Below are positions 6,465 to 51,179 of a DNA stretch of 64,000 nucleotides, piece by piece. Each line of letters starts with the position of its first letter. Positions within the stretch are counted from its first letter, which is position 1. A program made the position numbers and the translations under genes. The notes beneath the pieces are model-generated. The model did no database searches, had not been told where the DNA came from, and saw only the letters and a list, made by a program, of their open reading frames with translations. The DNA lies in sequence record MH791404.1. One strand, written 5' to 3'.

Positions 6465-6812
6465 TTAGTTGGCATAGTTGTTACGACGGTTCAGTTTCAG
6501 AGCGGTTTTCATTTCAGATTTATTGAAAGAGTAATGAACAGAACCATCCTCATAGGTAGTTTTCTTAACAGTGATTTCCAGCTTGTCACCAGCTTTAGCA
6601 TAGCAACCAAGGCAGTTTGTACCCTTCTGAGAAACAACGTGGTTGTTCATCTCGATACCTTCGGAAGTGGTAACGCTAACACGCTGGCTATCGGAATGCT
6701 TCTTAACGAACTTGGTAACAGTCACAGTATCAACGAAAGAAACTTCGCTAACTTCTTTTTTGCAACCAACCAGAACGAACAAAGCAACCAGAGCAATCAG
6801 TACGTGTTTCAT
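6465..6812 (-). CDS. lipoprotein, paralogue of 8554-8862
   Basis: Signal peptide with lipobox LVGC; CxxC. Confidence 0.8.
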   Translation of the reverse strand: MKHVLIALVALFVLVGCKKEVSEVSFVDTVTVTKFVKKHSDSQRVSVTTSEGIEMNNHVVSQKGTNCLGCYAKAGDKLEITVKKTTYEDGSVHYSFNKSEMKTALKLNRRNNYAN

Positions 6813-6839
6813 AATCTCTTCCTCAGTTAGGTATCTCGT

Positions 6840-6884
6840 TTCGATGTAGATATAATACCATAACCAAAGACCGATGCAAGTACT
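6840..6884 (-). repeat. 45-bp promoter repeat, copy 1 (TTGCAT-16-TATTAT)
   Basis: 43/45 identical to 7334-7378. Confidence 0.9.
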
Positions 6885-7122
6885 AAATCACACAATTTCG
6901 ATAATATGCATCAGAGTTCCATGGTAAAGGATTAATCTCTTTTGGATCAATACCACATTGAGCCATCATCAACTCGTGTGTTTTTCTCTTAAAGCATCGA
7001 CTCTCATTAAGATAACAAGCGTAACCACCATCATAAATTTGAACAACGTGGCGAGTGAATCCATCATCATGAGAATAGATCAGATCCTTCCCATGATTTG
7101 TTTCGCGTACAATTACATTCAT
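6883..7122 (-). CDS. hypothetical protein
   Basis: Start reassigned to MNVIVRE after upstream stop. Confidence 0.7.
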   Translation of the reverse strand: MNVIVRETNHGKDLIYSHDDGFTRHVVQIYDGGYACYLNESRCFKRKTHELMMAQCGIDPKEINPLPWNSDAYYRNCVI

Positions 7123-7123
7123 A

Positions 7124-7318
7124 TCAATCCTTAAAATACCAACATGGATGAGTGTTATCAAAATCGACTGGGGTTTTCCACTCACCGTACACATCATAAC
7201 AAATATTAGAATCTCCCTTGAAGAAACTAATAGAATCACTGGCTGGTGCACCAACATAACGAAGAACGTAAAACTTGGTATTGTTAGGTACGGCTTTGAA
7301 TTCACATTCGATTTTCAT
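7124..7318 (-). CDS. hypothetical protein
   Basis: AAGGAG SD, downstream of promoter repeat. Confidence 0.75.
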   Translation of the reverse strand: MKIECEFKAVPNNTKFYVLRYVGAPASDSISFFKGDSNICYDVYGEWKTPVDFDNTHPCWYFKD

Positions 7319-7333
7319 AATAGTCTCCTTCGC

Positions 7334-7378
7334 TTCGATGTAGGCATAATACCATAACCAAAGACCGATGCAAGTACT
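7334..7378 (-). repeat. 45-bp promoter repeat, copy 2
   Basis: 43/45 identical to 6840-6884. Confidence 0.9.
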
Positions 7379-7612
7379 TTATTCCATCCTCAACGAATCA
7401 AGCATCTCATTAATACGGTCTTTGAATACATATGAACAACCTCTCCAAGCAAAAAACATTTTGCCAGTACAAGGCTCACGAAACAATGGAAAAGAAATCT
7501 TACCCAAGTCAGAGAGCATCTTGTCAGTTGCTTCAATCTGGTCGCCAGCTTTGATACCCTTCGCAAGTTTAAGTAGCGCGTTTATCTCTTTCTGACTATA
7601 TTTTTTCTTCAT
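7379..7612 (-). CDS. hypothetical protein
   Basis: MKKKYSQ... start just below the N gap. Confidence 0.65.
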   Translation of the reverse strand: MKKKYSQKEINALLKLAKGIKAGDQIEATDKMLSDLGKISFPLFREPCTGKMFFAWRGCSYVFKDRINEMLDSLRME

Positions 7613-41686: not shown

Positions 41687-42373
41687 TTACCAGCCTTCCA
41701 TCGGGAACTCAAGATAAACTTGGGCGTTTCGACGAATTTCATTACTGATCTTCTTTACCCTGTCTGTATTACGGGAGACCCGACCAAACCAGCGCCAACC
41801 GTTACCGACTGTTTTCGAACCGGTATGCCACGTTTGCCAATCAAACTGCAACAATGTCCGATCAGGTGCAGTATGCAACACCAGTTCCCCATTGTCAATC
41901 TTTTCCAAAACTTCTTTGTGCCATTGGCGGTAAATGAGTTCGCCATCTGGAACTTGGCTAAACTCGGCTTCTCCTACTGCAAAATGAGTAGGGCAGATAT
42001 CACCGTTAACCAAACCAAGAATATGTTCAGACATATAACGAGGGTTGTCATAGTCTGGTTGACCTGCGGTGATGAAATGTTGACCTACAGGGATGTCCGG
42101 GCGCGGAACATCATCATGATGATAACCGGGGATTGCGGGATACCAGCCGGGCATAAGCATGTGTACACGAGAATCAAACACAACATCGCCATATTGCCAT
42201 TCTTCCGGTAATTTGGCGATGAAACTCCTAGTTATAGGACCACCATGATTTATGGCAAAAGCCAAATCGCAGTTGAAGAACATAGGTTCGTTCTTGATTT
42301 CGTCATTTGATACATGTTGAGCGAACTGTCCGCGATTTTGAAACTTGGAATTAAAAATCTTTTTGCTATTCAT
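41687..42373 (-). CDS. putative 2OG-Fe(II) oxygenase
   Basis: GYHHDD (HxD), distal WHTG, R.F.R strand. Confidence 0.65.
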   Translation of the reverse strand: MNSKKIFNSKFQNRGQFAQHVSNDEIKNEPMFFNCDLAFAINHGGPITRSFIAKLPEEWQYGDVVFDSRVHMLMPGWYPAIPGYHHDDVPRPDIPVGQHFITAGQPDYDNPRYMSEHILGLVNGDICPTHFAVGEAEFSQVPDGELIYRQWHKEVLEKIDNGELVLHTAPDRTLLQFDWQTWHTGSKTVGNGWRWFGRVSRNTDRVKKISNEIRRNAQVYLEFPMEGW

Positions 42374-43425: not shown

Positions 43426-43688
43426 TATACTTTTACCCCAGTTAGAACCACAATTTCATATTCATCCAGAGAGAAATCAACGTCCGGATCTGAATAAAAT
43501 GTGTTGAACCCTCTTTTAATTTCTCCCCTTTCGAGAATACGCTTGACATCCATATAAGCCAATAGACACCAAACGTTGTTAGAGAATTCCGGTTCTGTTA
43601 GACAATAGTCTGTTTCTCCATCTATGTAGCTGGTAAACACCTCCCAACCTACAAACTTCCCAGTTTCTTTATGTGCAAGTGCAAACAT
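43425..43688 (-). CDS. hypothetical protein, paralogue of 18169-18399
   Basis: GAGGGT SD; MFALAHKETGK. Confidence 0.75.
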   Translation of the reverse strand: MFALAHKETGKFVGWEVFTSYIDGETDYCLTEPEFSNNVWCLLAYMDVKRILERGEIKRGFNTFYSDPDVDFSLDEYEIVVLTGVKV

Positions 43689-44347
43689 ATCTTAACCCTC
43701 GNNNNNNNNNNNNNNNNNNNNNNNNNNNNNNNNNNNNNNNNNNNNNNNNNNNNNNNNNNNNNNNNNNNNNNNNNNNNNNNNNNNNNNNNNNNNNNNNNNN
43801 NNNNNNNNNNNNNNNNNNNNNNNNNNNNNNNNNNNNNNNNNNNNNNNNNNNNNNNNNNNNNNNNNNNNNNNNNNNNNNNNNNNNNNNNNNNNNNNNNNNN
43901 NNNNNNNNNNNNNNNNNNNNNNNNNNNNNNNNNNNNNNNNNNNNNNNNNNNNNNNNNNNNNNNNNNNNNNNNNNNNNNNNNNNNNNNNNNNNNNNNNNNN
44001 NNNNNNNNNNNNNNNNNNNNNNNNNNNNNNNNNNNNNNNNNNNNNNNNNNNNNNNNNNNNNNNNNNNNNNNNNNNNNNNNNNNNNNNNNNNNNNNNNNNN
44101 NNNNNNNNNNNNNNNNNNNNNNNNNNNNNNNNNNNNNNNNNNNNNNNNNNNNNNNNNNNNNNNNNNNNNNNNNNNNNNNNNNNNNNNNNNNNNNNNNNNN
44201 NNNNNNNNNNNNNNNNNNNNNNNNNNNNNNNNNNNNNNNNNNNNNNNNNNNNNNNNNNNNNNNNNNNNNNNNNNNNNNNNNNNNNNNNNNNNNNNNNNNN
44301 NNNNNNNNNNNNNNNNNNNNNNNNNNNNNNNNNNNNNNNNNNNNNNN

Positions 44348-45256
44348 NNAACCCTCAAACGGTTTAATCATGTGTTGGTTCTTGAGGAAGAGTTGAACGT
44401 AGTTCTCCCCAATCTTGGTTTGTTCATTATAAATATCCATCACGTTTGTATAGTTCTCGTATGCATACTCGCGAAACCATCCAGAAGTGATAGAAGTACA
44501 AACCTTTTCCAATGCCATCATAAAAGCTTTGGCTGGATGAACCTTACCCGGAAATGGTACTATACACCGTTCTAGTGCCAAAACGCAAGCTTCTTCGTAT
44601 ACACCAAGAAGTTTAATACGCATATCACACTGTTCAAACTTCGTTTTTGATGTCATCACTTCTTCACCATCAACCATGTATGACAAATAAGCGGGTCGTT
44701 CTCCAACTGCAATAGCTTGGTGAACTGTGTCATGATCCATAGTGTAAAAATCGTCGGTAAAGAAATCTTTCTTCCCTACATTAAGCTTCGGATGTCCGTA
44801 AGTCAAGGATTCTTTTTCACGTTTCTTGAAGATCTCGAATTCTTTTTCATTCATCACCACACCAAAGTCACGAAGTTCATGAATGGATTTCATGGTTTTG
44901 ATAAAATTCCGTGTATTCTTTTTGAACCGATGAGCCATCTTAATCGCAAGAAGTAGACCGGGATTAGCTACCTTGATCTTACCATGTTCGTTATTCATAT
45001 AGTCCGCAATCATCTCATCAGACGAACCCGGTTGAATGATATAAGCTTCATGATAGCAACTACGACAATCCCCACGTTCAACAACAAAGGCTCGTACATT
45101 TGGATTCTGTACGGCTACAGAGCGACCTTGCATACGAGCTTGGTATTCACTCCACTCTTTTTCTGTTGCGATGAAATCATAATCCATATCTTTAGTTGGG
45201 GCCATACAATCTGCGTAGAAGCATTCCAACATAGCACGAGAACCAATCAAAATCAT
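44348..45256 (-). CDS. Pol-beta-superfamily nucleotidyltransferase-like protein (about 302 aa)
   Basis: GAGGGT SD; LIGSRA...DMDYDF...HEAY; C-terminal ALEKVCTSITSGWFR; stop probably at the gap edge. Confidence 0.7.
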
Positions 45257-45302
45257 AATATTACCCTCAAAAATTATGGGGTCAATACGACCCCATTTCA
45301 AA

Positions 45303-45530
45303 TTAGCAACTACTTTCTTCCCAGTAGCTAGGTTCAGCATCAACGGACACGGTAAAACCTTCACCACCTTCACCGTAACAAGAACTACTCAACCAGTCGT
45401 TAAACACGATCTCGTCAGAGTCTGTGTCCAGTTCTACACCATAATCGTGCTGACCAGCAAGATCGCGTACTTCTTTCAGGAGTACAGCCAGTTGTTTTGC
45501 TTTTTCTACCAGTTCATTACTACGAGACAT
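45303..45530 (-). CDS. small acidic protein with two W-x-x-S-S-C motifs, C-terminal Cys
   Basis: ...DWLSSSCYG...YWEESSC-stop. Confidence 0.8.
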   Translation of the reverse strand: MSRSNELVEKAKQLAVLLKEVRDLAGQHDYGVELDTDSDEIVFNDWLSSSCYGEGGEGFTVSVDAEPSYWEESSC

Positions 45531-45554
45531 TTTATTTTTCCTTTTGTTTAAAAA

Positions 45555-45842
45555 TTAACACTGATCCGAAGAACTCATCCAATAACCATGACCGTCACCG
45601 TGACCGTAATCTTCGGCTTGTTCAAGATCCCAATACTCATGACCGAACGGGTAGTAAGTCCGACCACTACCGTAATCACCCACTGAAAATGATACAACAC
45701 CAGCATCAGCGAATTTAGTTGCAACATCTTCCATCATTTCTGACAGTTTAATAACTGTACTCACGGCTTGTTTTGCAGTCATCTCACCGCCTGCGTGGGC
45801 TGCTTCAATTTTGTCCATTTCTTCTTTGATTTTATCAAACAT
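45555..45842 (-). CDS. small acidic protein ending YWMSSSDQC
   Basis: AAGGA SD; C-terminal Cys. Confidence 0.8.
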   Translation of the reverse strand: MFDKIKEEMDKIEAAHAGGEMTAKQAVSTVIKLSEMMEDVATKFADAGVVSFSVGDYGSGRTYYPFGHEYWDLEQAEDYGHGDGHGYWMSSSDQC

Positions 45843-47142: not shown

Positions 47143-47322
47143 TCACATCACCTCTTCGAAAATTTTCAGGTCCGATACAAACTTGATGTGTTTGTTATCA
47201 AGGAGATACTGACCGATCCCTTTTTCGGCGGCATACTTGTCTACGGCACGATACTCACGGGTTTCGTCGTACACTTGATCATCTTGACCAACATAAACAA
47301 CTTTAAACATATATTCTTTCAT
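47143..47322 (-). CDS. hypothetical protein, 59 aa
   Basis: Read by hand; GGGAG SD downstream of promoter. Confidence 0.65.
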   Translation of the reverse strand: MKEYMFKVVYVGQDDQVYDETREYRAVDKYAAEKGIGQYLLDNKHIKFVSDLKIFEEVM

Positions 47323-47350
47323 ATCTATTCTCCCTTGTTTTGATGTAGAT

Positions 47351-47379
47351 ATATTCTCACAATTTAAATTTTAAGTCAA
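47351..47379 (-). promoter_or_regulatory. early promoter
   Basis: TTGACT-17-GAATAT. Confidence 0.65.
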
Positions 47380-47702
47380 CTGATGTATCCAAACTTTTTC
47401 AGTAATTTAAAAACCGGTTCATCACCTGCCTTCGGGTTCCGCCAGCATTCATCACCACGAACCCATACGCGGGGCAAATGAAGAACCGGGTCGATGATTT
47501 CACCATGATATAGAGTTACCAATACCAATGATGTGTCTACCTTAATCGAGTTATCCAGAGATAAGGCAGCGATTCCGATTTTTTCTTCGAAATCAAACAC
47601 ATCGCCCATATTTTCAGAAACTACATAGTATTTCCAACCAATGTTTTTCATACCACCTCTCACAAAACAAATCCTATACCACATAGGGTACAGGATTTTC
47701 AT
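47376..47702 (-). CDS. hypothetical protein
   Basis: ORF tiles run. Confidence 0.7.
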   Translation of the reverse strand: MKILYPMWYRICFVRGGMKNIGWKYYVVSENMGDVFDFEEKIGIAALSLDNSIKVDTSLVLVTLYHGEIIDPVLHLPRVWVRGDECWRNPKAGDEPVFKLLKKFGYIS

Positions 47703-47708
47703 TTATAG

Positions 47709-47981
47709 TCAATCAATTTTTGGGTATTTCGGCACTGTTTTATCCACCCATTCACATTGATAAACCCTTTCGGTCTTCACATCGTATTTTTCTGGGATCA
47801 GTTCTTTTCCGAACGACACCCATAACGTGATCCACAGAACATATCCAGCCGCTTGATACCAAGTCACATCTTTATTAAAGAAAATCTGTCTGAGTGCCAA
47901 AACTAACAATGGAAGAAGAAACCCAATACAAACAATACCAATTGCCCACCACATACGAACTTCTAAGATTGGATCCATCAT
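47709..47981 (-). CDS. two-TM membrane protein
   Basis: Two hydrophobic helices. Confidence 0.75.
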   Translation of the reverse strand: MMDPILEVRMWWAIGIVCIGFLLPLLVLALRQIFFNKDVTWYQAAGYVLWITLWVSFGKELIPEKYDVKTERVYQCEWVDKTVPKYPKID

Positions 47982-48376
47982 GAAAGTGCTTCCTCTTTTG
48001 TAATAATAGTAAGTTCTCGGTCTCGAAAATCCCAGTTGTTTCCATTAACGCTACGGATCTCTGTATTTCTAGCTGCGTAAGCAGATCCTTCCCCATGCCC
48101 ACCACCAAATGTGGTAACTTCGGTTGTTACTTTAAATTTCTGACCGTCATCGTTCTTCACGTAAAATTCGTCGGGTAGTTGGAATTGTTTTTCTCCGACC
48201 ATTTTGACATAACTTGACGCCCAACCACCACCAGAAACATATACAACTTTAACACCAGAAAGATTTTTCTTCAAGATGTTACAAGTGTTTTCTAAAATGG
48301 TGATTAATTGTACTGTGTTTTCACAGAGTCCAACCATATCAGAAATCCTTGATTTCTGTTCTTCGAAAGTGATCAT
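47978..48376 (-). CDS. hypothetical protein
   Basis: ORF tiles run. Confidence 0.75.
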   Translation of the reverse strand: MITFEEQKSRISDMVGLCENTVQLITILENTCNILKKNLSGVKVVYVSGGGWASSYVKMVGEKQFQLPDEFYVKNDDGQKFKVTTEVTTFGGGHGEGSAYAARNTEIRSVNGNNWDFRDRELTIITKEEALS

Positions 48377-48678
48377 TTCATACCCTCAATACGAGATTTC
48401 AAAACCATCAACGCCTCTTCTTGGTTCTTTAGGTCAATCGGACGGTTGTGATTGTTGTACATATCCCATAAGATTTTACAGGACACATTATTGAATACAT
48501 TATCAAAGATCCTAGTACTTTCACTATAGTCGATCAAAGATATAATTTTTTCTTCTTTGTCGAAATAGATCCTAGTATATTCGTCGATTTTCAAAACATT
48601 GTTCATCATCCAACTAATCTTACCATTGGCTTCTGCAAAGAACAACCATTTTACAATCTCGTTTTCAATATTTTTCAT
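48373..48678 (-). CDS. hypothetical protein
   Basis: ORF tiles run. Confidence 0.75.
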   Translation of the reverse strand: MKNIENEIVKWLFFAEANGKISWMMNNVLKIDEYTRIYFDKEEKIISLIDYSESTRIFDNVFNNVSCKILWDMYNNHNRPIDLKNQEEALMVLKSRIEGMK

Positions 48679-48875
48679 TCAGGAACCACCCATTGAATTT
48701 CCAATCGAGAATAAAATTCATTATTGAGATCTACAACACACCATCCATCAAGGTCATCCCAATATTCGATATCATCTAGATTGATGCGCCACTTTTCTGA
48801 CTCTATGCGACCTTCTCCACCAGACCACACTGCAATACAGTACCCCTCACCGGGCATGATATTAGTTAGTTTCAT
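48675..48875 (-). CDS. hypothetical protein, MK.v..P..G family
   Basis: MKLTNIMPGEGYCIAVW. Confidence 0.7.
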   Translation of the reverse strand: MKLTNIMPGEGYCIAVWSGGEGRIESEKWRINLDDIEYWDDLDGWCVVDLNNEFYSRLEIQWVVPE

Positions 48876-49133
48876 AATATCCNNNNNNNNNNNNNNNNNN
48901 NNNNNNNNNNNNNNNNNNNNNNNNNNNNNNNNNNNNNNNNNNNNNNNNNNNNNNNNNNNNNNNNNNNNNNNNNNNNNNNNNNNNNNNNNNNNNNNNNNNN
49001 NNNNNNNNNNNNNNNNNNNNNNNNNNNNNNNNNNNNNNNNNNNNNNNNNNNNNNNNNNNNNNNNNNNNNNNNNNNNNNNNNNNNNNNNNNNNNNNNNNNN
49101 NNNNNNNNNNNNNNNNNNNNNNNNNNNNAAGTA

Positions 49134-49166
49134 AAAACCCTATACCAGAGATGATATAGGGTTTTG
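49134..49166 (-). terminator. terminator downstream of rnlA
   Basis: AAAACCCUAUA...UAUAGGGUUUUU. Confidence 0.75.
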
Positions 49167-49183
49167 GTTATACTGTCAATGGA

Positions 49184-50362
49184 TTATTTCCATTTAGTTG
49201 GAATAAATTCTTCTGGATACTTGATAATGACTGCCATAATCTCTGGCATCACTTCCAGATCTGGTGCTTGGAACATCTTCATCACGATGTTAAAGAACAT
49301 ACGGTCTTGTTTGAATGTGTTCTGCATGGAGATTGCGTATTCGCGTCGTTCCATTCCAGCACAAGCCTTATGAGCCTCTCGGATCTTGGTATAAGTTGAG
49401 CCAGCAACACCAACCACATGATCTTCGAATTCTTGGATTTTTGTTAGAGATAACGAATCATCCAAAAACAGTTGACGTAAGTCATCTGACACACCTTGAG
49501 CAACTGCAATCACCAAATCCTTGTTGTTGGTAATGGAGTCTTTCAGCTTGTGGCGAGCCACATATGATGTGGTCTTGATCTTAACTCGGCTACCATCTTT
49601 CATAACCAGAATGTATCCTTCGATCCCAGTTTCGTTGTACATGTTCGAAATCGCGGCATTAACATCCGTACCTTCTTCAAACATGAACTGATCTACTGCA
49701 TATTTGCGGAACACAGGAGACCGAATCAACTTGTTGTTTGAGTAATATTCCCCAGTATCACGATGGCGGACGTTCAGAATCTTGAGACTTTCTTCTGGAT
49801 ACATAATAACAATCTGGTTCTTTGGAGAACACCATTCCAGATTTACGGTATATCCCGCTTCTTCGCAATCGATAACGAAGTCCAAAAGGTCTGTATGGTT
49901 CACCAACCAACGATTTGCATCATTTGCCTGTTCGCTATTAATTGAGGTCTTACTTTTCAACATGTAGTTAATGCGATTGTCGTCTTCTGGGTCGATGAAG
50001 TGATAAGAACTCACCAAACTACCATCTGCTTTATCTTCATATCGGTCGATATTAGAATAATCCAATTCCAGTTTATCGAGTCCAACAACACCGGAATTTG
50101 TTAGGTTCCATGCTTGGCGTTCTGCTAGGTTGAAAAACTTTTCCATGGGTCGAGATGCGATCCGGTACGGTTCACCGTTAACCAATTCAAACATGATACC
50201 ACGACACTCTAGAGCGTCTGGGAGCATCCATTGGGTTAATCCTGCGATGTGATAGGAGAATACCCGAAAATGGTTTCCAATGGAAGACCAATGGTCACGA
50301 AAGAAGAAACAATCGCCATGTTCTTCGGTTAGCTTCAACAGGTTATTATAAAGTTCTTTCAT
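49184..50362 (-). CDS. rnlA: RNA ligase 1 / tail-fibre attachment catalyst
   Basis: LPDALECRGIMFE, IASRPMEKFFNL, KADGSLVS (motif I), EGYI, VKIK. Confidence 0.95.
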   Translation of the reverse strand: MKELYNNLLKLTEEHGDCFFFRDHWSSIGNHFRVFSYHIAGLTQWMLPDALECRGIMFELVNGEPYRIASRPMEKFFNLAERQAWNLTNSGVVGLDKLELDYSNIDRYEDKADGSLVSSYHFIDPEDDNRINYMLKSKTSINSEQANDANRWLVNHTDLLDFVIDCEEAGYTVNLEWCSPKNQIVIMYPEESLKILNVRHRDTGEYYSNNKLIRSPVFRKYAVDQFMFEEGTDVNAAISNMYNETGIEGYILVMKDGSRVKIKTTSYVARHKLKDSITNNKDLVIAVAQGVSDDLRQLFLDDSLSLTKIQEFEDHVVGVAGSTYTKIREAHKACAGMERREYAISMQNTFKQDRMFFNIVMKMFQAPDLEVMPEIMAVIIKYPEEFIPTKWK

Positions 50363-50541
50363 TCTGTAATCCCCAAATTGATAGTATTAAGATCTTTCAG
50401 TTCAGTTTCGGACAATTCGAATGTGACACACCCAACCTTTTTAGCTTGAGTCAAACGAGTCATGATATCGGCAGATCGTGCGATAATAAGAGTGATAGTT
50501 TCTAAGTGTTTTACGTCTAAATTTGTTAAGTCGACTTTCAT
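50359..50541 (-). CDS. hypothetical protein
   Basis: ORF tiles run. Confidence 0.65.
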   Translation of the reverse strand: MKVDLTNLDVKHLETITLIIARSADIMTRLTQAKKVGCVTFELSETELKDLNTINLGITE

Positions 50542-50813
50542 AGAGCGTCCATAATAGTTTGGGTATCCATAGCCGCCAACAATTCGGATTCTCCGAAATG
50601 GGCTAGGATATCTTGGATAGTGAAGTAACTTAATACGTCTGAGTCACCAAAGTGGCTAATAAATTCGGATATGGTAATTGAATCCATTACTGGTTCTGGG
50701 TCTACCTGATCTAATGTCAAGAAAATATACGGGTTGTTTCCATATCCACCAGAAATTTCAACACCACGAGCTTCTAATTCTACATTAATTCTATTCATAT
50801 CAAATCCATTCAT
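50538..50813 (-). CDS. hypothetical protein with internal tandem repeat
   Basis: TISEFISHFGDSDVL / TIQDILAHFGESELL. Confidence 0.7.
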   Translation of the reverse strand: MNGFDMNRINVELEARGVEISGGYGNNPYIFLTLDQVDPEPVMDSITISEFISHFGDSDVLSYFTIQDILAHFGESELLAAMDTQTIMDAL

Positions 50814-50979
50814 GGATCAGGCTATATTCTTCTTTTGTGAGAATAACCTGATTTGTTTTCTTATTGAACCATGGGTAATAAATCCATGTATACAAAGCAA
50901 ATTGTTCATATGTCATAATGTTTTCAAGATCGTCTGGATTTGTCAATTTTGCATTTTTAAGGTCAATTACAATTTGCAT
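50800..50979 (-). CDS. hypothetical protein, 59 aa
   Basis: Read by hand (MQIVIDLKNA...). Confidence 0.5.
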   Translation of the reverse strand: MQIVIDLKNAKLTNPDDLENIMTYEQFALYTWIYYPWFNKKTNQVILTKEEYSLIHEWI

Positions 50980-51179
50980 TTTAGGATATACCTTTCAATA
51001 ATTTGTAGTTCTACGATGTCAACCAATATAGTATCCACCAATGGAGACTTCAAAGCAGCAACCAACTTCAACAGGATATATTTTTCATCTGCGGTTGGGG
51101 TATCACTTTGAATAGTACGTTGGATCCACTCAAGTTCGGTGTTTTCCAAAACATATTCTAATTTAATTTCATACTTCAT
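50967..51179 (-). CDS. hypothetical protein
   Basis: Start MKYEIK after upstream stop. Confidence 0.65.
   Translation of the reverse strand: MKYEIKLEYVLENTELEWIQRTIQSDTPTADEKYILLKLVAALKSPLVDTILVDIVELQIIERYILKCKL

Follow-up and report, generated by a model that had tools for sequence, protein, structure and literature searches.

MenT toxins, which have two lobes, extend the 3′-CCA ends of tRNA with pyrimidines (PMC10435456, PMC11375011), and their fold class moves phosphate onto an active-site Ser or Thr upon binding of a small partner (PMC11375011). The partner of MenT1 is MenA1, a protein of 68 amino acids (aa) that is encoded upstream, binds by a single long helix crossing the active sites of two MenT1 molecules and induces MenT1 to phosphorylate its own active-site Thr39 (PMC10435456, PMC11375011). 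MenAT/AbiE, in which an enzyme toxin is paired with a small cognate protein, is the closest known system to the genes that we analyzed in a stretch of 64,000 nucleotides (the window, to which all coordinates refer unless another genome is named) from Aeromonas phage Assk (MH791404.1), a 232-kb T4-like phage of the genus Ceceduovirus. At this locus, where every gene lies on the minus strand, two small acidic proteins with a Trp/Ser/Cys tail are encoded just upstream of a nucleotidyltransferase-like enzyme. From the conservation of these sequences and of their arrangement, the small tailed proteins and the enzyme are best read as a phage-specific module composed of an enzyme and its tagged partners, which may work like a MenAT/AbiE system.

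The upstream gene, assk_117 (45555..45842), is an open reading frame (ORF) for a 95-aa protein of the one-tail type with an isoelectric point (pI) of 4.46. Its C-terminus reads Y-W-M-S-S-S-D-Q-C-stop, in which the tag W88-M-S-S-S-D-Q-C95 occupies 45558..45581. The adjacent gene, assk_116 (45303..45530), encodes a 75-aa protein of a two-motif subfamily. This protein ends in Y-W-E-E-S-S-C-stop, a short form of the tag with Trp at −5 (W70-E-E-S-S-C75; 45306..45323), and carries an additional internal motif, D-W-L-S-S-S-C (W46-L-S-S-S-C51; 45378..45395), which is followed directly by Y-G-E-G. A preliminary description of the window, made from its letters alone, had reported two adjacent acidic proteins with such tails and a second copy of the motif in the shorter one, and the ORFs, translations and pI values (4.5 and 4.1) bear this out. 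The internal copy is retained in 24 of the 29 unique members of the two-motif subfamily, in whose alignment (A5) D-W..S-S-C-Y-G-E is invariant. Both proteins match the C-terminal part of phrog_899, a family of unknown function (2e-19 for the 95-aa and 1.2e-6 for the 75-aa protein), and a profile-profile comparison relates the two types (probability 89%, E 2e-6). Nothing meaningful was found for them in Pfam, NCBIfam or PADLOC.

The enzyme is present in 730 phage records, and its association with tagged proteins could be followed in both directions. With the enzyme as the only query, we retrieved 80 IMG/VR loci, each including 8 kb of flanking sequence to either side, and scored as tagged any ORF of ≤250 aa in which the final ten residues matched W-x(0-2)-[SPN]-S-x(0-3)-C-end. 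Tagged ORFs numbered 215 of 5821 on the enzyme strand, compared with 0 of 6531 on the opposite strand. Nearly all lay 0.2-3.3 kb upstream of the enzyme, with 207 of the 215 start positions falling in the three 1-kb bins directly upstream, 4 farther upstream and 4 downstream. From one to five such ORFs were found in 76 of the 80 loci; when the loci were grouped at ≥60% enzyme identity, tagged ORFs were present in 19 of 20 lineages, the twentieth having its enzyme at a contig edge. No neighbor other than the small tailed family was common to more than 5 lineages, and across the 20 lineages no third gene was found conserved between the small genes and the enzyme.

Starting instead from a small protein of Pseudomonas phage Psxphi15, we found relatives in Myxococcus phage Mx1, Ralstonia jumbo phage RsoM2USA, Erwinia jumbo phage Kaldavass and Acinetobacter phage Acj9, and all four (4 of 4) encode an enzyme homologue 20-950 bp downstream on the same strand (hidden Markov model (HMM) E 1e-90 to 1e-115). 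The complete 96-kb Psxphi15 genome has four family members at 47189-49310, the enzyme at 50125-51093 and no members elsewhere. Similarly, the tag motif occurs in the 64-kb Assk window in just the two ORFs described above, a count that 24 N-masked runs leave somewhat incomplete, as they do other ORF and motif counts there. The region, a 100% match to the Assk record, is shared with 14 further closely related Aeromonas phage records at 92-98%, and the module ranges from T4-like phages through the ∼150-kb Phapecoctavirus and ∼96-kb Otagovirus phages to jumbo phages of 340-370 kb and Myxococcus phage Mx1. The hosts of these large virulent phages are Gram-negative bacteria. Among genomes of 185,579 species, the enzyme was found only on seven metagenome-assembled contigs, 6 of which have a tagged ORF upstream. 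Thus, the pairing is far more general than a view of a single window could show, and the distribution in both directions strongly supports the earlier suggestion that the small proteins and the enzyme form one module.

The tail is, together with a hairpin described below, the most conserved part of the small proteins, more so than their helix. A word-based search was too insensitive for this family (just 11 relatives of the 95-aa protein), and an exhaustive profile search of 1.84 billion representative proteins was therefore used, which returned 177 clusters, 153 of them small. The terminal Cys was exact in 140 of the 153 small representatives, and 8 more had one residue past it. Among the 140 ending in Cys, Trp was found at −7 in 134, Ser at −5 in 109 (otherwise mostly Ala or Pro), Ser at −4 in 138 and Ser at −3 in 137, shares that are somewhat favored by the search because the profile includes the tail. 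The Ser and Cys residues singled out in the preliminary description are thus conserved in other genomes. An HMM seeded only with the 95-aa protein, and applied with no motif filter, recovered 149 distinct ORFs in the loci, 134 of which end in Cys. W-x-x-S-S-C, the short form, is the mark of the two-motif subfamily, which includes the 75-aa protein.

Two further properties suggest that this tail behaves like a tag. First, Ser codons are mixed (AGY in 31 of 136 at −4 and in 37 of 136 at −3, with TCN in the remainder), as are Cys codons (88 TGC, 48 TGT), and all three stop codons are represented, so selection on the tag acts at the protein level. Second, when the last 12 residues were removed, the tag-bearers, which were 52-217 aa long in the examples read, split into 17 BLAST clusters, one holding 160 of the 203; the tag therefore outlasts the body to which it is attached.

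The gene downstream of the small proteins (44351..45256), which has 302 readable codons and forms the N-terminal part of the GenBank coding sequence (CDS) assk_115, encodes the nucleotidyltransferase-like enzyme. Pfam divides it into DUF7277 (residues 1-87, 2e-21; 44996..45256) and DUF7275 (residues 102-288, 1.5e-70; 44393..44953), and phrog_2141 covers the full length (1.8e-125). The N-terminal lobe has a strand-helix-strand topology in the predicted model and carries two hallmarks of the Pol-beta type. The hG[GS] feature is G5-S6 (45239-45244), invariant in alignments A1, A2, A6 and A7 and placed between strand 2-4 and helix 5-13. The [DE]h[DE]h feature is D25-x-D27 (45176-45184), at the start of strand 26-30 and invariant even in truncated homologues. 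A candidate for the third acidic residue, E70 (45047-45049), on strand 67-73, does not vary in A2, is conserved to at least 90% in A1 and A7 and is nearly invariant in full-length enzymes; its region is missing from the short homologues of Vibrio, Streptomyces and Gordonia phages, in which the helical lobe is preceded just by the first strand, the GS-bearing helix and the strand with DxD. Because these short homologues keep just those parts, GS/DxD probably makes up a single active site together with the helical lobe. The residues invariant in every homologue, distant ones among them, are G5, S6, A8, D25 and D27 in the N-terminal lobe and K106, H109, K120, H175-D176, H179, E221-E222 and E229-R230 in the C-terminal helical lobe. 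These results substantiate an enzyme of ∼302 aa with GS, DxD and Glu motifs and a helical C-terminal domain, as first noticed in the window, despite the single 563-aa CDS in GenBank.

The AlphaFold2 (AF2) model of the enzyme is two-lobed and confident (predicted local distance difference test (pLDDT) 90.4, predicted template-modeling score (pTM) 0.85). When the model was compared with solved structures using Foldseek, the sole match below E 0.001 was the Mycobacterium tuberculosis toxin MenT1 (8an4_A; E 6.6e-4, probability 1.0), with 170 columns aligned onto the 195-residue chain. The next matches were the MenAT1 complex and a fungal nucleotidyltransferase-like protein (5uvd, E 1.1e-2), and terminal uridylyltransferases appeared only above E 0.1. 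Motifs, model topology and fold match together support a two-lobed Pol-beta-type nucleotidyltransferase whose predicted fold is nearest to the MenT/AbiEii toxins, in agreement with the initial assignment of the enzyme; no sequence profile of a named family backs that assignment. An HD phosphohydrolase activity for the C-terminal lobe, an idea raised by H109 and H175-D176-H179, was backed by neither the fold search nor Pfam. Among predicted viral structures, matches were solely to DUF7275 or DUF7277 proteins, two of them from giant viruses of eukaryotes. BFVD entries A0A3G5AJ90 (Sylvanvirus, 508 aa) and A0A3G5AE53 (Satyrvirus, 571 aa) are longer DUF7275 proteins with the same predicted fold.

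The phage module resembles MenAT1 and AbiEii in that its enzyme has two lobes, an N-terminal one bearing GS, DxD and a candidate third acidic motif and a helical C-terminal one. As in MenAT1, small helix-bearing genes lie just upstream on the same strand, here in 19 of 20 lineages. In other respects the module differs. The phage partners are unrelated to MenA or AbiEi by Pfam or PADLOC match (the 95-aa type also by PDB), and the enzyme is not filed here as a member of DUF1814 (AbiEii) because the profile test failed, with no DUF1814 match in 42 members of the enzyme family at E up to 10. The C-terminal lobe of the phage enzyme is much larger than that of MenT and has its own invariant His/Asp/Glu set. 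In its first conserved helix K106 and H109 are invariant and K113, seven residues past K106, is nearly so; this spacing resembles that of motif IV, K-L-x-A-a-x-x-R, but the residues differ. Motif IV is a C-terminal motif specific to DUF1814 (PMC10435456). Unlike MenAT, the module resides on virulent phages, with almost no cellular copies, and each enzyme has one to five partners, all bearing a C-terminal tag not described for MenA (PMC10435456, PMC11375011).

The tag family itself has no known counterpart. In the AF2 model of the 95-aa protein (pLDDT 82, pTM 0.63) helices span residues 2-17, 23-48 and 73-79 and strands 52-54, 61-64 and 87-90; the predicted layout of this type is two N-terminal helices, a beta-hairpin, a variable acidic loop and the C-terminal tail. 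The conserved amphipathic helix (A23, I27, L30, A34, A41, A45-D46) has i/i+4/i+7 spacing and is followed by a strand, the nearly invariant hairpin Y-G-x-G-x-x-Y (D-Y-G-S-G-R-T-Y-Y-P in Assk), an internal W71 and then the tail, of which the final residues form a short turn (pLDDT ∼73). Searches of the Protein Data Bank (PDB) by sequence profile and by structure gave no accepted match for the 95-aa type, and no fold match below E 2 was found among solved structures. Lacto-N-biose phosphorylase (PDB 2zus/3wfz, residues 640-704), which scored a profile E of 0.008, was set aside as a local hairpin-plus-strand resemblance, the structural search being empty below E 2. The phosphorylase does share both motifs in order (D-Y-G-K-G-R..Y..G, then W-S-S..E-C), a likeness that may reflect convergent local structure. 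Searches of the literature on the enzyme and small-protein families, RB69 ORF names, phage RiPPs (peptides that ribosomes make and that are modified after translation) and phage nucleotidyltransferases yielded no account of either family, which agrees with the initial impression that the pairing has no characterized function.

Because the linkage is two-way, cross-lineage and position-specific, and because the tail behaves like a tag, we consider it probable that the enzyme and the tagged proteins are direct partners of some kind. As to what that partnership does, we tentatively favor covalent transfer of a nucleotidyl or phosphoryl group onto a tag serine. The small protein would dock on the enzyme, the tag would enter the catalytic cleft that GS/DxD and the helical lobe's conserved Lys, His and Glu residues form, and a nucleotidyl (or phosphoryl) group would then pass to a tag serine; in this way one enzyme could service several partners with different bodies. 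Transfer is favored because the invariant residues of the tag are nucleophiles, because one enzyme serves several differently bodied partners and because the fold has a precedent for Ser/Thr phosphotransfer. The nucleotidylylation of Ser put forward in the preliminary description is plausible.

Protein nucleotidylylation by Pol-beta-type enzymes is known from GlnD acting on PII, GlnE on glutamine synthetase and MntA on HepT, with Tyr residues in loops as acceptors. Modification by a nucleotidyltransferase of a hydroxyl side chain on a small cognate protein is the same chemistry as that proposed here. Unlike the phage proteins, those substrates have no C-terminal tag and no tandem paralogues, and their folds are unrelated; neither sequence nor fold of the phage enzyme matched the GlnD, GlnE or MntA families. 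Paralogous proteins that share a short invariant C-terminal tag and a single enzyme gene are also found in CaaX prenylation and in the PEP-CTERM/exosortase system. There the enzymes, chemistry and location are unrelated, the phage proteins being cytoplasmic and acidic, and the likeness is one of logic only. A bolder proposal goes further, namely a new post-translational tagging system confined to large virulent phages, in which the MenT-fold enzyme modifies the tag (Ser would receive a nucleotide or phosphate, and the terminal Cys might react afterwards) and thereby activates small effectors against host targets. We regard it as rather doubtful.

Several observations weigh against an enzyme that acts on tagged partners. 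In a CC31-like phage (contig L027, IMGVR_UViG_650627040, 165,540 bp; ∼6500-7554) the enzyme gene is intact and 91% identical in DNA sequence to that of PG7, and both small genes are lost; other sequence has taken the place of the small-gene segment, and the breakpoint coincides with where the last small gene ends. No tagged ORF was found within 4-5 kb of the distant enzyme homologues of Brevibacillus phage Sundance, Vibrio phage VH7D, Streptomyces phage BillNye, Gordonia phage Norvs and roseophage DSS3_VP1. The enzyme can therefore exist, and has or had a role, without tagged partners. The free terminal Cys is usual rather than absolutely required, because a variant of the Otagovirus type buries the motif (W-E-x-S-G-x-C) ahead of ∼17 further residues ending in ...Y-G-W-N-I; this variant lies at 2543-2950 of IMG/VR locus L005, with relatives in L048, L055, L056, L061, L062, L067-L069, L071 and L072. 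Part of the tag may be structural, because the model places W88 in strand 87-90 of the small protein's own sheet. Finally, Pfam gave only DUF7277 and DUF7275 for 42 enzyme members even at E up to 10, no NCBIfam family or PDB sequence match was found, and the fold match to MenT1 is moderate (TM 0.47 on the target, 13% identity). With no named family matched by sequence, the nucleotidyltransferase assignment thus rests on motifs, topology and that fold match.

Ranking close behind covalent transfer is the possibility that the small proteins are non-covalent regulators resembling MenA1. The enzyme, like MenT, would act on RNA 3′ ends, probably of tRNA, and the acidic proteins would bind it through their amphipathic helix, with the tail as a pseudo-substrate, and so block, time or retarget it while remaining unmodified themselves. 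MenT1 and the MenAT1 complex are the best matches among solved structures, the gene order is the same, with the small gene or genes upstream on the enzyme strand, and the small proteins are acidic with a conserved helical spacing. This explanation also best accounts for the persistence of the enzyme without partners in the CC31-like phage and in distant lineages, as expected of an enzyme with a substrate of its own. RNA ligase or polynucleotide kinase genes within 8 kb of the enzyme in 5 of the 20 lineages, and also in BillNye, DSS3_VP1 and Kaldavass, would fit an RNA substrate, but they are a minority pattern without a baseline. However, one to five divergent paralogues per enzyme are unlike toxin-antitoxin pairs, conservation peaks in the tail and hairpin and not in the helix, and invariant Ser-Ser with a terminal Cys suggests chemistry over mere occupancy; nor is the enzyme basic overall (pI 6.2). 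The analogy with MenT1/MenA1 lends support to an idea raised at the outset, that small partners hold a toxin-like enzyme, and we regard regulation of this kind as possible, though less likely than transfer.

We also considered the possibility that the enzyme and the small proteins do not interact and are separate accessory genes traveling together in a variable early-gene hot spot, the tail having another role, such as contact with a host target, metal binding or linkage of subunits via the lone terminal Cys. Consistent with this idea, all lineages have a mosaic of small early genes in this region, and the small tagged genes can be exchanged as one block; some enzyme homologues have no tagged genes, and a single Cys, present in 79 of the 153 small representatives, would suit an intermolecular metal or disulfide role. 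The predicted position of W88 within the small protein's own sheet fits as well. In contrast, adjacency, order and strand are kept in 19 of 20 lineages, without any other common neighbor, and the pairing extends across T4-like phages to Mx1, whereas mosaic genomes do not retain unrelated genes in this way; the absence of family members elsewhere in the Psxphi15 genome also speaks against independent travel. We conclude that mere co-travel is unlikely.

Far less probable is a RiPP-like pathway, the extension of Ser nucleotidylylation offered in the preliminary description, in which the modified Ser is eliminated to dehydroalanine and the terminal Cys closes a thioether ring of the lanthionine or aminovinyl-cysteine (AviCys) type. 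As in such RiPPs, Ser and Cys lie close together at the C-terminus, several tagged genes per enzyme resemble a multi-precursor cluster, and the distance from Ser(−3) to the terminal Cys in the long tag would correspond to that of C-terminal AviCys rings. The short tag of the same genomes has Ser at −1 and −2, a different spacing, and we know of no precedent for elimination after nucleotidylylation. No dehydratase, cyclase, decarboxylase, protease, exporter or other RiPP maturase was found conserved beside the small genes, the enzyme being the only neighbor family common to more than 5 of the 20 lineages. The tagged proteins, moreover, are folded, 50-200 aa long and conserved in their bodies, unlike leader-core peptides, whose pattern is reversed here: the C-terminal end is conserved, the middle varies and the body is folded (model pLDDT 82). 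The lanthionine step is rated low because maturase genes are absent and the Ser-Cys spacing is not the same in both tag forms. Least credible of all is ubiquitin-like conjugation, also raised in the preliminary description, in which the enzyme would adenylate the carboxylate of the terminal Cys and the small proteins would be joined to targets: the strict C-terminal position of a conserved residue is the sole point in its favor, and it fails on each testable feature, since the enzyme fold is of the Pol-beta and not the E1/ThiF type, the small protein is a helical hairpin with three short strands and no solved-fold match rather than a beta-grasp, the end is Cys and not Gly-Gly, 8 representatives have an extra residue after Cys and one variant has a buried motif.

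The families involved, DUF7277, DUF7275, phrog_2141 and phrog_899, are currently listed only as of unknown function. That up to five paralogues next to one enzyme share a strict C-terminal tag points to a dedicated step of recognition or modification, of which, to our knowledge, there is no example in phages. If the enzyme is MenT-like, phages would use a tRNA-end-modifying class of enzyme hitherto known from bacterial toxin-antitoxin and abortive-infection systems, with a partner family of their own. Either outcome would give a function to many anonymous early genes and provide a short sequence rule for finding more.

The extent of the enzyme gene differs between our reading and the Assk record, which is flagged UNVERIFIED and annotates a single 563-aa CDS, assk_115 (43649..45340). 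The annotated start at 45340 overlaps the 75-aa gene, whereas all enzyme homologues begin M-[IL]-x-I-G-S, which matches the ATG at 45256, preceded by a ribosome-binding site, GAGG, 8 nt upstream. From this ATG, 302 codons can be read to 44351, and the stop codon is hidden, the window being N-masked from 44349 downwards. In phage CC2 the counterpart of the masked stretch (window 43702-44349) is a separate gene for an HNH endonuclease of 210 aa, which phage AP1 does not have; the AP1 enzyme, 330 aa when counted from the upstream start, ends where the Assk mask begins. Because the masked part is an endonuclease gene in CC2 and is absent from AP1, the enzyme proper is taken as ∼302 aa. The HNH endonuclease stretch downstream of the enzyme looks like a mobile insertion.

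The annotated assk_115 also spans a 9-bp stem-loop followed by a T-rich run (45276..45296), which lies between the 75-aa gene and the enzyme start codon and may be a candidate partial terminator in Assk. Clean stem-loops precede the enzyme in some other lineages. A stem-loop was rejected as a general feature of the module, those at this position being not more stable than random windows of the same loci (median −12.5 versus −10.7 kcal/mol). Farther downstream, a 228-aa ORF without a Pfam match (41687-42373, minus strand) recurs 1-3 kb from the enzyme; it probably reflects synteny and is not part of the module, because it was seen in just 2 enzyme lineages (22 loci). The unrelated phages Assk (49184-50362, minus strand), Kaldavass, BillNye and DSS3_VP1 have genes for RNA ligase and polynucleotide kinase a few kb from the enzyme.

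Other Pol-beta-type enzymes of phages, the MNT-like enzymes, make competitor cyclic dinucleotides and have the hallmark GS-x-AY[GAN]T-x4-SDxD (Ho et al. 2022, bioRxiv 10.1101/2022.06.09.495361). Like the enzyme studied here, they are encoded in accessory-gene regions, near genes for nicotinamide adenine dinucleotide (NAD) salvage and methylases. Unlike them, the present enzyme has no A-Y-G-T, its GS and DxD are ∼18 residues apart, and no tagged small proteins are described with the MNT-like family. The table in that study names the CC2 gene F485_gp357 (322 aa) and not F485_gp173, the orthologue of the present enzyme (bioRxiv 10.1101/2022.06.09.495361). The CC2 phage group thus has, in F485_gp357, a second, unrelated nucleotidyltransferase belonging to the family that makes cyclic dinucleotides.

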